A stretch of DNA of 64,000 nt from Guillardia theta CCMP2712 (lineage: Eukaryota > Protista > Cryptophyta), in NCBI RefSeq assembly GCF_000315625.1, contig NW_005434624.1, positions 514,477 to 578,476 of the forward strand, written 5' to 3'. This document shows positions 35,791 through 41,767 of the stretch, one piece after another. Both the position numbers and the translations under genes were made by a program. Below the pieces are notes generated by a model. The model was not told the origin of the DNA. It saw only the letters and a list, made by a program, of their open reading frames with translations, and did no database searches. How positions within the stretch are numbered: position 1 is the first letter of the stretch; each line of letters begins with the position of its first letter.

Positions 35791-36315
35791 GGGGGAGTGG
35801 AGATGGCAGAGGTTGTCAGCTCTTCATCATCTTAACCGCACTGAATATTGCATCTTTCTCTGACGTGACAAGCTGAGACAAAACTCATTGAGGTATGACA
35901 GGTAATTTCATATTGAGCTCCCCTCAGTTCTCCCCCCACACACAGAATGCTACTGTCTTCCAAGTTCCAACCCCGCCAGCCAAACTTGAGCTGAGAACTT
36001 CTAGTCAGCAAGAGTGATGGTATAGCAGAAGCTCTTAAAATTCAAGAAGCATCCACACGAATTGTTTCAACACAAGCATTCGCACAACTAGAGCTCCACA
36101 AGGATATGCTCCTGTTTCAGACTTGAGAGCTGCTGCCCACCATCTCCAGGTCTATGATTCTCTCACCTCCTCTTCTCTTACTCGCTCCCACTTATTATAA
36201 ACTCACTTGCGAGCTCGGGCCCTTTCACTTCCCCTTCCCCTTGTCTGTCCCCTCTCCTTCTCCCACGCCCTGTCAGTCTGGTACTATGTCGCTCTCCCCC
36301 CCTTACCCTCCCTCC

Positions 36316-36318
<3 letters not shown>

Positions 36319-36357
<39 letters not shown>
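36319..36357. repeat. (CT)n microsatellite
   Basis: Direct reading. Confidence 0.9.
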
Positions 36358-36359
<2 letters not shown>

Positions 36360-36489
36360 TCCTCCTCCTCCCCCCCCCCGCCCCCCCTCCTTTCTCTCTA
36401 TCTCCCTCTCTTTCTCTCTCCTTCTCTCTCCCTCTCTCTTCCTTTCTCTTCTCGTCGGCCCCTCCCTCGCTCCTGTGACCTAACTCAGC

Positions 36490-36795: not shown

Positions 36796-37588
36796 ATCAA
36801 TCTTGCCGTTTGTGCCCCCCGGGGTTCTGAGGTAGGGGTGGAAAGCAGTGATAGAGGGGGTGCTGTTGAGTTCGGTAGGATAACAGAGGAAGAGCAGAGG
36901 AAACTCTGCGGCAAAGGGACTCAGGGCAAGGGCAGGGAGGGGAGCGGACAGGGAGAGGAGAGAAGCTTACGAGCAGCGACGTACAATGAAAGGCAAGAGC
37001 ATGAGAGAGATAGAAGAGGCTGCATATGAGGTAAGAGAGCGTGAAAGCGAGGAGAGTGAAGAGAAGGTTGACTTTCCTGTTCCCGTGTTCTCTTGCTCCT
37101 CTCCTCCTCTCTCCCACCTCCTCTGTCTCTCTGTCTCCCTGTCCCTCTGTCTCTCTGTCTCCCTGTCTCTCTGTCTCTCTGTCTCTCTGCCTCTCTGCCT
37201 CTCTGTCTCTGTCTCTCCTTATCCTTCTTCTCATGTAATCCCTCCCCTCCTCCGTTCCCCTCGGCGTTTTCAGCTTCCACACCTCTTTGCAACTCCCCAC
37301 AGCTCCACTTTGCTGCAAGTGGTCATGTATGCTGTGCAGTCTCCTTTAAGAAGAGACGTAGAGGAGATTTGATCCGACGTAGAAGAGAGACAAGGATGCG
37401 ATAAGAGGGAGAACGAGGTAAGTCTGCGAGGCCTCGCTGCTGATCCCTGCTACAGGTCCCAGGCTCTCTGCAAAGTCATCCCAACGGACTTCGAGCTCAA
37501 GGACGGGGGGCGGTAGACGGTCGGGTTGAGAGGAGAGCTCGAAGGGAAGAGGTCCTGGTGCTAGAGCTGGGGGGAATACGGGAGGAGG

Positions 37589-39948
37589 ATGAATCAGAAT
37601 CAGATCTCGAATGACGAGCTGAAGGAGAGGGAGGAGGATGCAAGGATAAGGAAGGGGCTGATAAAAGCAATCAACAGAGGAGATGAGGTCAAAGTGAGAG
37701 GACTGGCCGTGAGTGCAGGACCAGAGCGACTGAAGCAGATGCATAGCGTAGGCGTGGCTCAAGGCACCACGATAGTCAGCGGGTGTAGGGACAAAACATT
37801 GAGGGTGTGGGACCTGGAGGAGATGAAGGAGAAGGCTTGTCTCCAAGGTCACATATGGGACGTAACCAGCGTGGCGATCAGCAGAGATGGGAAGACGGCA
37901 GTCAGCGCGAGTTGGGACAACACTTTGATTGTGTGGGACCTGGAGAAGATGAACGAGAAGGCTTGTCTCCAAGGTCACGAATCGTGGGTAAACAGTGTGG
38001 CGATCAGCGAGGACGGGAGGACGGCAGTCAGCGCGAGTAACGACTCGTCAGTGATTGTGTGGGACCTGGAAGAGATGAAGGAGAAGGCTTGTCTCTATGA
38101 CGTTGAATGTGGCTGTGTGCTGAGCGTGGCGATCAGCGAGGACGGGAAGACGGCAGTCAGTGCGTGTACTGATGAGATTTTGAGGGTGTGGGACCTGGAG
38201 GAGATGAAGGAGAAGGCTTATCTCCAAGGTGATGAATGGGAAACGCGAAGCGTGGTGATCAGCAGAGATGGGAAGACGGCAGTCAGCGGGGGCGCAAACA
38301 AGAAACTGATTGTGTGGGACCTGGAGGAGATGAAGGAGAAGGCTTATCTCCAAGGTCACGAATCATGTGTAAACAGCGTGGCGATCAGCGAGGACGGGAA
38401 GACTGCAGTCAGCGGGAGCGGGGACAAGACAGTGAGGGTGTGGGACCTGGAGGAGATGAAGGAGAAGGCTTGTTTCCAAGGTCAAAGTAGCGCTGTTACG
38501 AGTGTGTCTTGGAGATCTGTCAAGGGGTCGATGGGCTCAGCACTGCACGTGGCAGCGGCGCGAGGGGTCTGGCCTATCTGTGAGAGGCTGCTGGAAGTAG
38601 GCGGGGGAGAGCTCGGCGAGCTGCGAGACTCGATGGGACGAACAGCGGCGAAGGTAGCGCGAGAGAGACAGGACGAGGAGCTGGCGAGCAAGATAGAGGA
38701 CTGGATGCGGCGGCTATGGAGTGGGGAGCTTTTGATAGAGGCACTGCAAGACAAAGTCAAGGCAAAGCACGAGGCAATGGAGAGAGAGGAGAGGGAACTG
38801 AAGGAGCACAAGCAGAAGCAGCAGACGGAGCGAGAAGGGAAGGAAAGGCAGGAGAGAGAGTCCGAGCAATGCAAGCAGCATGAAGTGTTTTTTGAGGTTC
38901 TGTTTGTGATCGTATGAGATTCGATGTGACAGGTGGATTTTTCTGTCTGCAGGTAGGAAGCACTCGATCGGTTGCCTACAACAGCTTCGTCGTCAGCCGT
39001 CAGATTGGCTCAAGCTCCTTCAAGCTCGTCTACAAGGCTCGATGGCAGCAGCTGCAGGGCAGCAGCGCAGACGTGGCCATCCTGCGACTCCGAGGCAGCG
39101 GACTCACCGAGAAGAGGGACGAGCTCGAGCAGAAGGCGAAGACCTTCCAGCAGCTAGGCCGTCACCCAAACCTCCTCCGCCTCCTCGCCATCACCGTCGA
39201 GCCAAGCTCTGGCGACTTCTGCCTGGTGACTGAGTTGGCTTCCAAGGGTTCTCTTGATGAGATCTTGTACAAATTTGCCGTGGAGGAGGAGACGTTGGGT
39301 CTACTGGTGCAGCTGCAGGTGGTGAGACAGATCTGTGACGGGATGGTGCAGCTCTCGTTGCACGAGGTCGTACACCGGGGCCTGGGCGCGAGGAACGTGC
39401 TGGTCTTCAGTCTGGATGCGCAGGACCACCTTGGTGTCAGTGTCAAGATAGCGGACTACGCAGGATGGACTGCTCAGCCGATGCGATGGATGGCGCCAGA
39501 GAGCATCGAGAGAAGACAGTTCTCCCAGAAGAGCGACGTGTGGGCTTTCGGGCTGACCATGTGGGAGGTCTGGACTTACGGCCAAATCCCTTATGGGTCA
39601 ACTATCACAGACGATGCGCTTGTAGGGTCGAAGGTGGTAGACGGAGAGCGACCTGCAGCACCTGCGTCATGCCCTGCAGTAGTGTATACAATCATGCAGG
39701 AGTGCTGGAAGAAGGAGGAGGAGGAGCGGCCAAGCTTCAGCGAATTACAGCGAAAGCTCCAGGAGCGATACGACGAGGCCGTGCAAGGGCGCGGGCAGCA
39801 ATGCGTCATCTGCATGGATCACAGCGCTGAATGGGCGCTGATCCCCTGCGGTCACAAGTGTCTCTGCGAGTCTTGCAAGGAAGGAGCGACAGCCAGGAAG
39901 TGTCCGATGTGTCGCTCGAGCCCCACGAGCATCTACAAGATTTACTGA
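37589..39948 (+). CDS. Ankyrin / WD40-repeat / ankyrin / coiled-coil / tyrosine-kinase-like pseudokinase / RING protein (~767 aa; exons 37589-38896 and 38953-39948)
   Basis: Six VWDLEEMKEKA-type WD40 units; SALHVAAARG and MGRTAAKVA ankyrin motifs; kinase fold with PMRWMAPES and SDVWAFG; C3HC4 RING CVICMD...PCGHKCLCESC...CPMCR. A phase-0 GT-AG intron at 38897-38952 joins the two ORFs. Confidence 0.85.
37765..38510 (+). repeat. Tandem 126-bp coding repeats (WD40 units)
   Basis: TGGGACCTGGA at 37808, 37934, 38060, 38189, 38315 and 38441 (spacing 126,126,129,126,126). Confidence 0.92.
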
Positions 39949-40421: not shown

Positions 40422-40580
40422 ATCTCCTCCAGGTCCCACAGCAGTCAGCGCGAGTAAGGATGCGACAGTGAGGGTGTGGGACCTGGAGGAGATGAAGGAG
40501 AAGGCTTATCTCCAAGGTCACAGTAGCGCTGTTACAAGTGCGCCTTGGAGATCTGTCAAGGGGTCGATGGGCTCAGTGCT
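40422..40580 (+). pseudogene. Detached fragment of the WD40 gene (last WD unit plus start of ankyrin), preceded by an inverted 19-bp piece
   Basis: 40441-40577 aligns with ~38405-38541 (AVSASKDATVRVWDLEEMKEKAYLQGHSSAVTS); 40422-40440 is the reverse complement of 40475-40493. Confidence 0.8.
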
Positions 40581-40599
40581 ACTGGCCGACCAGTAACCA

Positions 40600-41076: not shown

Positions 41077-41615
41077 TGTAGGGATTGACGATCCTGATGA
41101 TATACTTTGACTCCATGAACTTGAACCAACTTGCTAACCGGTGGCAAGCAAGCAACAGGAACCTCAACACAACCGCGCTCGCTGAACGTATAGAAAGTTA
41201 GGATAGATTTAGGATCCAACCGACAGGATAAATAAGCTATTTAACTGAAGTTTCCGCAACCGCTTTTAAGTAACTCCTATCATTACACTCCCGAGCACAT
41301 CATCACCTGAGAAACATCTCGATGAACTTCGCTGCATTAGGAATTAGAATTAGTCACATTAAACTCACTCATCAATTGACGAAGAAACGGCTTTTTCAAT
41401 TCACGGAAGGACAACCAAGAATCAGACGCAGGATTGTCATACCCTTTCCATCTGATCAAGTATTGCACACGACGACCTTTCCCACGTCGTGCTAAGATTT
41501 GATCCACTTCATAAAATTCACCATCTGAATGCACAATAGGATCAGGTGGTGCAACTTTATTGTTGAAACACTCGTCACGAAGATGATACGGTCGAAGCTT
41601 CGAAACGTTGAACAC
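41077..41615 (-). mobile_element. Ty3/Gypsy chromovirus 3' remnant: integrase tail with chromodomain plus probable 3' LTR (41077-41287)
   Basis: VFNVSKLRPY...PPDP...YEVDQILARR...QYLIRWKGY...DSWL. About 50 nt after the stop, a short purine run GGGAG precedes TGTAATGAT...ATCCCTACA (TG..CA termini, 7/9 inverted match). AT-richer than host genes. Confidence 0.75.
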
Positions 41616-41767
41616 CAAGAAACGTAGCGTCATCTTTCCGAGCAGCCCCCTTCTGGGCCGGGCAGCCTCCTACTGGGCGGCCACCAGACAGCTGTCACGG
41701 TCAGCAGCCTCCTCCAGGCTGATCTGGTCCTGGCAACTCGCATCCATCACTGAATGCAAGCCAAGAC

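Follow-up and report, generated by a model that had tools for sequence, protein, structure and literature searches.

How an alga might recognise viruses, parasites or its own kind is a matter about which almost nothing is known, and the question is raised by a gene of the cryptophyte Guillardia theta CCMP2712. The gene lies at positions 37589-39948 of a 64,000-nucleotide (nt) stretch of DNA (the window; contig C50:514477-578476 of an 87.1 Mb genome in 669 contigs). The original prediction, made from the letters alone, saw in it a candidate immune or allorecognition receptor, with hypervariable WD40 repeats linked to ankyrin, coiled-coil, kinase-like and RING modules. After following it up, we see about an even chance that the gene belongs to a Guillardia-lineage family of RING E3 ubiquitin ligases whose WD40 propeller is a ligand-binding domain that diversifies by repeat homogenisation together with site-specific variation. 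That it serves immunity or allorecognition, and that it signals by ubiquitination, is what we infer. The pattern that carries this reading is in the WD40 array, whose parts are as follows (aa, amino acids).

37757-38485, + strand: WD40 array (aa 57-299), six blades, seen by Pfam, Tandem Repeats Finder, AlphaFold2 (AF2) and Foldseek
37850-37867, + strand: hypervariable patch 1, example from unit 1 (H-IWDVT, aa 88-93), d-a loop and start of strand a; recurs every 126 nt
37910-37924, + strand: hypervariable patch 2, example from unit 1 (SWDNT, aa 108-112), b-c turn
38486-38518, + strand: terminal extra strand SSAVTSVSWRS, after the last unit

Tandem Repeats Finder describes the array as 5.6 copies of a 126-nt period (37774-38484, 79% matches). 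There are six units containing VWD; unit 0 is degenerate at its N-terminus, with three strands, and units 1-5 are complete at 42 aa (43 in unit 3). All twelve variable strings quoted in the prediction are present in the translation. The accompanying description of the units as nearly identical in DNA is right for the framework, where units 1-5 have a nt identity of 0.88 (0.86-0.94) outside the two variable windows, and wrong for the units as wholes, which are 77% identical in nt and 66% in aa and fall to 0.45 (0.33-0.73) inside the windows. Units of the paralogues are 68-78% identical in aa, and the framework by itself shows 88-92% nt identity between units of one gene. This uniformity is far above that of ordinary WD40 proteins, yet under the published cut-off, which for high internal conservation in fungal NOD-like receptors (NLRs; NOD, nucleotide-binding oligomerization domain) is 85% aa identity between WD units (PMC4986451). 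The variation is concentrated at alignment columns 4, 5, 6 and 8, just after the GH position, and at columns 24 and 26, which flank the turn Asp, with column 43, just before GH, also variable. Entropy is 2.3-3.2 bits at columns 4, 5, 6, 8, 24 and 26, whereas most framework columns are near 0, and within patch 2 it is columns 24 (D-1) and 26 (D+1) that vary most.

These columns have a consistent place in the predicted structure. The AF2 model of exon 1 has a mean predicted local distance difference test (pLDDT) score of 82, rising above 90 over aa 61-297, with 23 strands in six blades, and Foldseek finds the propeller nearest to ordinary seven-bladed WD40 structures (5yzv, WDR61, WDR5; E 6e-26 to ~1e-25). 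On the modelled strands the variable columns map to the d-a loop, to the residues that open strand a and to the b-c turn. In WD40 topology the d-a and b-c loops make up the top face and the a-b and c-d loops the bottom face. From the AF2 strands combined with this standard topology, the hypervariable residues are predicted to form the top face of the propeller, in keeping with the proposal that they would map to a single face. The bottom-face a-b loop (SxDGK) and c-d loop (LEEMKEK) are nearly invariant inside the window gene. Columns 6, 8 and 24 match what we take to be the usual WD40 contact hot spots. A six-blade propeller is predicted, but the model gives little confidence in how blade 1 closes; pLDDT drops to 55 past aa 300, and the terminal strand SSAVTSVSWRS may complete blade 1, a point on which the model is unsure.

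The gene has close relatives. The search for paralogues which the prediction had proposed shows a multi-copy gene: with the exon-1 protein as query, the genome yields no fewer than 12 other loci, 55-69% identical (three genes on C239, two on C122, and loci on C409, C67, C300, C572, C612, C658, C349, C194, C15 and C17). Paralogue proteins are filed at NCBI as 'hypothetical protein GUITHDRAFT_…, partial'. They share the N-terminus, the post-propeller region, the intron and the kinase-RING exon with the window gene. The same columns are hypervariable throughout the family, with Trp, Arg, Gly, Asp and Asn frequent there, and among 33 units there are 27 distinct signatures in the d-a patch and as many in the b-c patch. 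Unit number varies as well, being 2, 5, 6 or 7 across the family genes, a comparison between paralogues of one strain.

The relationships among units suggest how such arrays change. In the unit tree the five window units form one clade (support 0.94), a sign of concerted evolution that keeps the units of a gene alike, and units of the other genes interleave regardless of position. The window units have the framework VWDLEEMKEKACLQGH and all other genes VWDLGSMTQKACLEGH, with a framework nt identity of 0.88 inside the window gene versus 0.79 between it and the others; the gene is a divergent singleton of the family, at a synonymous divergence (dS) of ~0.45 from the paralogues. Between C239c and C122a, dS is 0.07 in the N-terminus, 0.05 in the ankyrin/helix region, 0.027 in the kinase and 0.287 in the WD array. 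Because the array value stands so far above the 0.027-0.07 of the flanks, the two arrays are non-orthologous, with the rest of the genes homogenised by gene conversion. C239c and C122b, which are very recent duplicates, keep the d-a patch and differ in the b-c patch in four of six position-matched units. The repeat shuffling that had been proposed for this gene is therefore borne out, in units numbering 2-7 per gene and in arrays shuffled between paralogues.

Selection was read from the paralogues and from tree-based counts, since counts by the method of Nei and Gojobori (NG86) on the window units alone are saturated and were set aside. Pairwise NG86 comparisons between units of the same gene give a ratio of nonsynonymous to synonymous rates (dN/dS, or omega) of 3.26 at columns 6, 8 and 24 and of 0.42 in the framework. 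Parsimony counts on the unit tree give 63 nonsynonymous versus 6 synonymous changes at these three columns, an omega of 2.0, with 0.43 in the framework. Together these values suggest diversifying selection at the hot columns. The excess of nonsynonymous change that the prediction looked for is thus found family-wide (omega ~2-3 at the hot columns versus 0.42 in the framework), and not in the window gene alone. Elsewhere the constraint is of the opposite kind. Comparisons of the window gene with its paralogues across WD, kinase and RING give dN/dS of 0.28-0.45 at dS ~0.45-1.0 (kinase 0.43-0.44 and RING 0.32-0.38, at dS ~0.45), and the RING and kinase fold of the window gene are under purifying selection, the loss of a catalytic Asp notwithstanding.

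The rest of the gene model is given by the following features.

37589-39948, + strand: two-exon gene, made of two open reading frames (ORFs) in different frames, 37589-38917 and 38914-39948
37589-38896, + strand: exon 1, ATG at 37589; ends at 38896 if the donor is GAG/GT, with an alternative donor at 38884/38885; both phase 0
37589-37756, + strand: N-terminal helical region (aa 1-56), kept in all paralogues (…LIEAIERGDEVQVRALAVSAGAERLKQKH…)
38522-38674, + strand: ankyrin-like region (aa 312-362; LHVAAARG…LLEVGG…GRTAAKVA), ~1-2 degenerate repeats
38726-38881, + strand: long E/K/R-rich helix (aa 380-431), AF2 pLDDT 74-96
38897-38952, + strand: intron, GT…AG, 56 nt, or 68 nt with the donor at 38885; acceptor at 38952/38953
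38953-39948, + strand: exon 2, with the kinase-RING cassette (331 aa and a stop codon)

We favour a 767-aa product over the 763 aa that the alternative donor would give, because the second donor (38896/38897, GAG/GT) is homologous, in an alignment of donors, to the CAG/GTCCTG donor of the paralogues. The intron position is common to the window gene and the paralogues C239c, C409, C122a and C239a, the reading frame is unbroken over both exons, and the splice signals are intact. The predicted protein runs from N-terminal helices through the six-bladed propeller, the ankyrin-like stretch and the long charged helix to a tyrosine-kinase-like (TK-like) fold and a C-terminal C3HC4 RING (Pfam: WD40 E 3e-44; PK_Tyr_Ser-Thr E 1.3e-56; zf-C3HC4_3 E 1.5e-12). 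In public sequencing runs, 28 raw RNA reads match the gene; because nearly all of them lie on the RING (39808-39921) with loose ends, they probably come from paralogues.

Some of the modules between propeller and RING are less standard than their names suggest. Helices are predicted by AF2 at aa 8-30, 33-42 and 45-49 of the N-terminal region, and Pfam finds no match in the N-terminal 64 aa, neither HET nor another death-effector domain. The stretch originally called ankyrin is a conserved ankyrin-like region, in which Ank_2 stays below threshold (E 0.035, 15.1 bits versus a cut-off of 27.3) and pLDDT is low over aa 310-339. It is strongly kept in the paralogues, in a gene on contig C35 and in the Hanusia phi protein P0015, and in the latter two genuine ankyrin repeats follow it. 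The supposed coiled coil is likewise a real E/K/R-rich helix that could equally be a single alpha-helix spacer, judging from its predicted structure. The ankyrin/helix linker searched alone against a set of 5.8 billion proteins gave no match, a blank that is uninformative, as the known Hanusia relative was missed too. The RING itself is as predicted, with all eight zinc ligands.

The second exon has the following features, and AF2 models it as a kinase followed by the RING (pLDDT 85.8; predicted template modelling score 0.79).

38992-39759, + strand: TK-like pseudokinase domain (PK_Tyr_Ser-Thr 1.3e-56)
39022-39024, + strand: glycine-loop Lys (GSSSFK), which alignments to EGFR and ACK1 place at the third glycine of GxGxxG
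39082-39084, + strand: Leu at the position of the beta3 (VAIK) lysine; the window reads VAILRL
39373-39381, + strand: HRG replacing HRD, catalytic aspartate lost; the window reads HRGLGARN
39454-39462, + strand: DYA replacing DFG/DYG; activation segment ~22 aa shorter than in the paralogues
39796-39945, + strand: C3HC4 RING (zf-C3HC4_3), with a conserved C-terminal aromatic tail (…YKIY)

The solved chains closest to the kinase domain are EGFR, Src/Abl, Eph and CSK. The label of pseudokinase is in all likelihood right, though for a different reason than the absent VAIK lysine, and rests on the change of HRD to HRG. The missing VAIK lysine is no evidence of a pseudokinase, because it is absent throughout the cassette family, whose glycine loop contains an invariant Lys: 10 of 10 aligned cassette members are without the beta3 lysine (VAV[L/Q]) and all have the glycine-loop Lys (GSGSFK, K24). 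The WD40 paralogues of the window gene read HRELAARS and DYG. Of the other Guillardia cassettes, 8 of 10 have both HRDLAARN and DYG intact, C6 (L035) having DYA and C166 (L040) HKILIARQ, and those with HRDLAARN and DYG are probably active, as far as motifs predict. The window's HRGLGARN and DYA depart from these catalytic motifs. Loss of the catalytic Asp sets the WD40 subfamily (HRG or HRE) apart from the other cassettes, save for C166 with its HKILIARQ. A C-terminal tail of the kind seen here supports dimer-dependent activation of the ubiquitin-conjugating enzyme (E2) in IAP/MDM2-type RINGs.

An exhaustive profile-free protein search shows that exon 2 is a full-length member of a family found well beyond this gene. 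It matches many proteins end to end at 40-47% identity, with other N-terminal domains: TPR in Telonema subtile, LRR in Tetraselmis, PTB in Hemiselmis, ubiquitin and Ig-like domains in marine metagenomes, and none detected in Hanusia phi. Hallmarks of the cassette are the GSxSFK glycine loop, a TK-type PxRWMAPE, the zf-C3HC4_3 RING and an R-I-Y/F tail. G. theta has more than 25 further cassette loci (50-76% identity), which have upstream an LRR and a transmembrane segment (C9, C8), MORN repeats (C85), a beta-helix or weak SPRY ORF (C6), or short zinc-ribbon and charged-helix exons (C206, C89, C66). Because the cassette is a single exon, exon shuffling is likely, and we regard the kinase-RING exon as a likely mobile cassette, newly recognised here. 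The statement that no described family has this architecture therefore stands in part: the literature searched holds no prior description of a WD40-pseudokinase-RING family, a result that does not prove absence, nor of a TK-like kinase-RING cassette family with a shifted lysine, but the kinase-RING half is itself a widespread protist cassette. P0128, a kinase-RING protein of Hanusia phi, was considered as a relative bearing the WD40/ankyrin half and rejected, as it is without that half.

A displaced lysine of this kind has a precedent, in that WNK kinases are active with a beta2 lysine standing in for the beta3 lysine (PMC4718504). The cassette likewise lacks the beta3 Lys and has a glycine-loop/beta2 Lys available. 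It differs in being TK-like by its best matches and not a WNK relative, for which reason the likeness is probably convergent, and the window gene is in addition without the catalytic Asp. The WNK1 loop presumably reads like that of the cassette.

The WD40 half also occurs with a different partner. A 1448-aa ORF on C35 (L016:2160-6503; G000:C35:578659-583002) encodes a cysteine-rich ephrin-receptor-like region, seven WD units, genuine ankyrin repeats and an ADP-ribosyltransferase (ART). Its WD units are of the window's type at 50-55% identity, and it has the ART motifs R, S-T-S and E-E-E. P0015 of Hanusia phi, a sister cryptophyte, is transcript-derived and has three WD units (framework VWDLETMKEKACLTGH), the LHVAA…GRTA region, ankyrin repeats and an ART, and is 48% identical to the C-terminal half of the C35 protein. 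Both resemble the window gene in unit type (50-62% identity, VW[DN]LET[MK]…KACLTGH) and in LHVAA…GRTA; they differ in that an R-S-EXE ART replaces the pseudokinase-RING, and in the N-terminal cysteine-rich region that C35 adds. The same WD40-ankyrin module is thus alternatively fused to a toxin-type ART, an observation that is new here. Within the WD40-RING family, C239b (L013:3264-3863) and C194 (L023) have another C-terminus (…KRVSNIDKSTTLRSAVKAAKRHGSSIGLQG…) in place of the charged helix and kinase-RING, with no match in Pfam or PADLOC.

As predicted, no NACHT domain is among the Pfam matches of either exon, and contig C50 has no PF05729 match. Elsewhere in the genome there are ~17 NACHT loci, at least nine of which adjoin WD40 matches; one of these, on C13 (L028:3591-7919), is a NACHT-pentapeptide-WD40 gene with 13 nearly identical units of 42 aa, variable after GH and at D-1/D+1. 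The alga thus has conventional NLR-like genes in parallel with the NACHT-less WD40-RING family. Two other affiliations were set aside. Matches to the whole of exon 1, mostly in cyanobacteria and planctomycetes at 30-50% identity, are generic WD40 similarity and not a sign of transfer, and PADLOC matches to mad6, PD-T4-6 and HEAT-ARM_XIII are generic kinase and WD40 similarity and not membership of a defence system.

The nearest known parallel to the array is fungal. HNWD proteins have 42-aa WD units in concerted evolution, hypervariable codons on the interaction face under diversifying selection, variable unit number, and exchange within and between members (PMC12222747, PMC4986451). HET-E, HET-D as well as HET-R of Podospora anserina share with the window family the 42-aa units, the few hypervariable face codons, the variation in unit number and the exchange of units. 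The window family differs in having neither NACHT/NOD nor HET, a dead kinase with a C-terminal RING as its effector, less uniform repeats (66-78% versus ~85% aa) and a cryptophyte alga as its source. By analogy, the window protein would work like the sensor domain of HET-E/HET-D; lacking both NACHT and HET, it is not a member of that family.

A second parallel, drawn from general knowledge, is with TRIM proteins. In TRIM5alpha and other TRIMs of the RBCC (RING, B-box, coiled-coil) type, a RING is connected via a helical region to a recognition domain with positively selected loops, in expanded, fast-turnover families that lack an NTPase switch. The window family resembles them in combining a RING, a helical region and a variable recognition domain. 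Its RING is C-terminal and the order reversed, the recognition domain is WD40 and not PRY/SPRY, a pseudokinase lies between, and the N-terminal RING/B-box/coiled-coil order is absent, with no Pfam match to a B-box. In function the protein would thus stand nearer to a TRIM5-like restriction factor than to an NLR, as it lacks a NOD switch. It is not a TRIM, given the C-terminal position of its RING and the absence of a B-box. COP1, TRAF7 and RFWD3 are RING-coiled-coil-WD40 ligases, and Arabidopsis KEG is RING-kinase-ankyrin-HERC2. From general knowledge again, they have the same domain types as the window gene (RING, helical linker and WD40, or kinase and ankyrin in KEG) and differ, by description only, in domain order, in being single-copy conserved genes, and in repeats that are neither internally conserved nor hypervariable.

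We hypothesize that the ligand of the variable top face is fast-changing or non-self, and may be a protein of a virus, of a parasite or of a conspecific. A scaffold or switch would be formed by the ankyrin-like stretch, the charged helix and the dead kinase, and the C-terminal RING, probably as a dimer formed via its aromatic tail as in IAP/MDM2-type RINGs, would recruit an E2. The RING would then ubiquitinate the bound target or itself. The gene probably arose when a WD40-ankyrin module was joined to the mobile kinase-RING exon by exon shuffling.

The surroundings of the gene are repetitive. CT-rich microsatellites, (CT)n and CTCTGTCT x11, lie immediately 5′ of it at 36308-36451 and 37121-37210. 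On the other side is one further feature related to the array.

40437-40585, + strand: detached partial copy (C50:554881-555057), ~150 nt, ~93% identical to 38405-38555

The detached copy consists of the end of the last WD unit and the terminal strand, with its own b-c patch (SKDAT) and similarity lost after this, and looks like a partial duplicate of a window-type gene. A 98-aa ORF on the minus strand at 41337-41633, 1.4 kb downstream, ends …EFYEVDQILARRGKGRRVQYLIRWKGYDNPASDSWLSFRELK. We take it as a candidate chromodomain of a chromovirus-type retroelement integrase.

A number of observations weigh against a diversifying family of recognition ligases, or against the window gene as an example of it. 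The 66% aa identity between its units is below the 85% that marks high internal conservation. Taken by themselves, the hot codons of the window gene are saturated (the proportion of synonymous sites that differ, pS, is 0.84), with an uninformative dN/dS below 1. The omega of 2.0 at columns 6, 8 and 24 is borderline against the local neutral expectation (p=0.054), compared with p=3.6e-7 against the global synonymous rate, and tree-based counts can be inflated by recombination among units. The window gene, C239c and C122a are clearly intact over both exons; in many other paralogues the gene is interrupted by a frameshift, an N gap or the end of a contig, which fits both fast turnover and difficult assembly. 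No cassette member found beyond the WD40 subfamily has WD40 repeats, and the WD40 and kinase-RING combination is so far from Guillardia only. The propeller of the window gene may itself be impaired, because it has only six blades, the GH histidine is absent in units 3 and 4, and in unit 4 the turn Asp is replaced by N. As to expression, the public sequencing runs searched yielded no spliced read across the intron, and exact-match contigs for the gene come from two runs whose RNA status is a guess.

These points bear differently on the alternatives. We consider it unlikely that the family consists of ordinary regulatory E3 ligases or adaptors with recently amplified repeats, in which top-face variation reflects relaxed constraint or different endogenous substrates. 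Housekeeping ligases that combine RING and WD40 are common, as COP1, TRAF7 and RFWD3 illustrate from general knowledge, the local dN/dS test is the borderline one, and the cassette is also joined to MORN, PTB and ubiquitin, which are not suggestive of immunity. Ordinary ligases would not readily account for an omega of ~2-3 exactly at the canonical contact columns versus 0.42 elsewhere, for 27 distinct patch signatures among 33 units, or for the shuffling of arrays in genes that are otherwise homogenised. The many truncated copies on small scaffolds, which suggest birth-and-death turnover, and the alternative fusion of the module to a toxin-type ART also speak against them. It is in our view quite unlikely that the family is real but its divergent singleton, the window copy, is a relic that is decaying or no longer works, its propeller being short and degenerate in part and its kinase dead. 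Its 763/767-aa frame is uninterrupted with intact splice signals, both halves fold confidently in AF2, dN/dS versus the paralogues is 0.28-0.45 in WD, kinase and RING, and the exact-match contigs are possibly from RNA. For a relic speak the propeller of six blades and not seven with its irregular units, the HRG, DYA and truncated activation segment, which are more degenerate than in the paralogues, the lack of a clear transcript in the public runs searched, and the fragmentary duplicate 500 nt downstream.

We attach only a small probability to recognition among conspecifics (mating, gamete, kin or allorecognition), or a selfish drive-like element, in place of pathogen defence. No partner locus has been identified, and from general knowledge G. 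theta is a free-living unicell without known somatic fusion. Such a role would suit the copies that cluster on small repeat-rich scaffolds, and the chromodomain-like ORF 1.4 kb downstream, which is probably a retroelement remnant. HET-D/E, the best-studied analogue, is an allorecognition system (PMC12222747). HNWD arrays also cannot be assembled from short reads (PMC12222747), and the paralogues are full of N gaps, so the unit number and order in the reference could be an assembly artefact, which we nevertheless find highly improbable. One public contig of run X1 does link 38179, the start of unit 4, back to 37799 in unit 1 through 40 shared bases; it represents a variant array or else a de Bruijn mis-join within the repeat. 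The window units, however, differ at ~23% of bases, enough for unambiguous assembly, and over 37799-38009 and 38109-38179 independent contigs agree without a single difference. The hypervariable-site pattern would in any case survive an error in the unit count.

We therefore return to the proposed family of RING ligases with a diversifying WD40 sensor. More tentatively, and as a proposal that we hold possible without thinking it probable, it may be part of a NOD-independent innate recognition in cryptophytes, and perhaps in other marine protists, in which exon shuffling combines exchangeable WD40, LRR and TPR sensors with exchangeable effectors, the kinase-RING cassette with its WNK-like lysine or the ART: an algal counterpart of TRIM5 with the diversification of HET-E. 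In its WD40 branch, new specificities would come from concerted evolution combined with diversifying selection on the top face. A by-product of the analysis is a large undescribed protist kinase-RING family with a shifted catalytic lysine, and the WD40-bearing genes are concrete candidate receptors for work on algal hosts and their viruses. Uniform repeat arrays that vary at a few surface codons have so far been documented mainly in fungal NLR recognition. The same device in a cryptophyte, free of a NOD and wired to a RING ligase or an ART, suggests that this way of generating specificity is not tied to NLRs.

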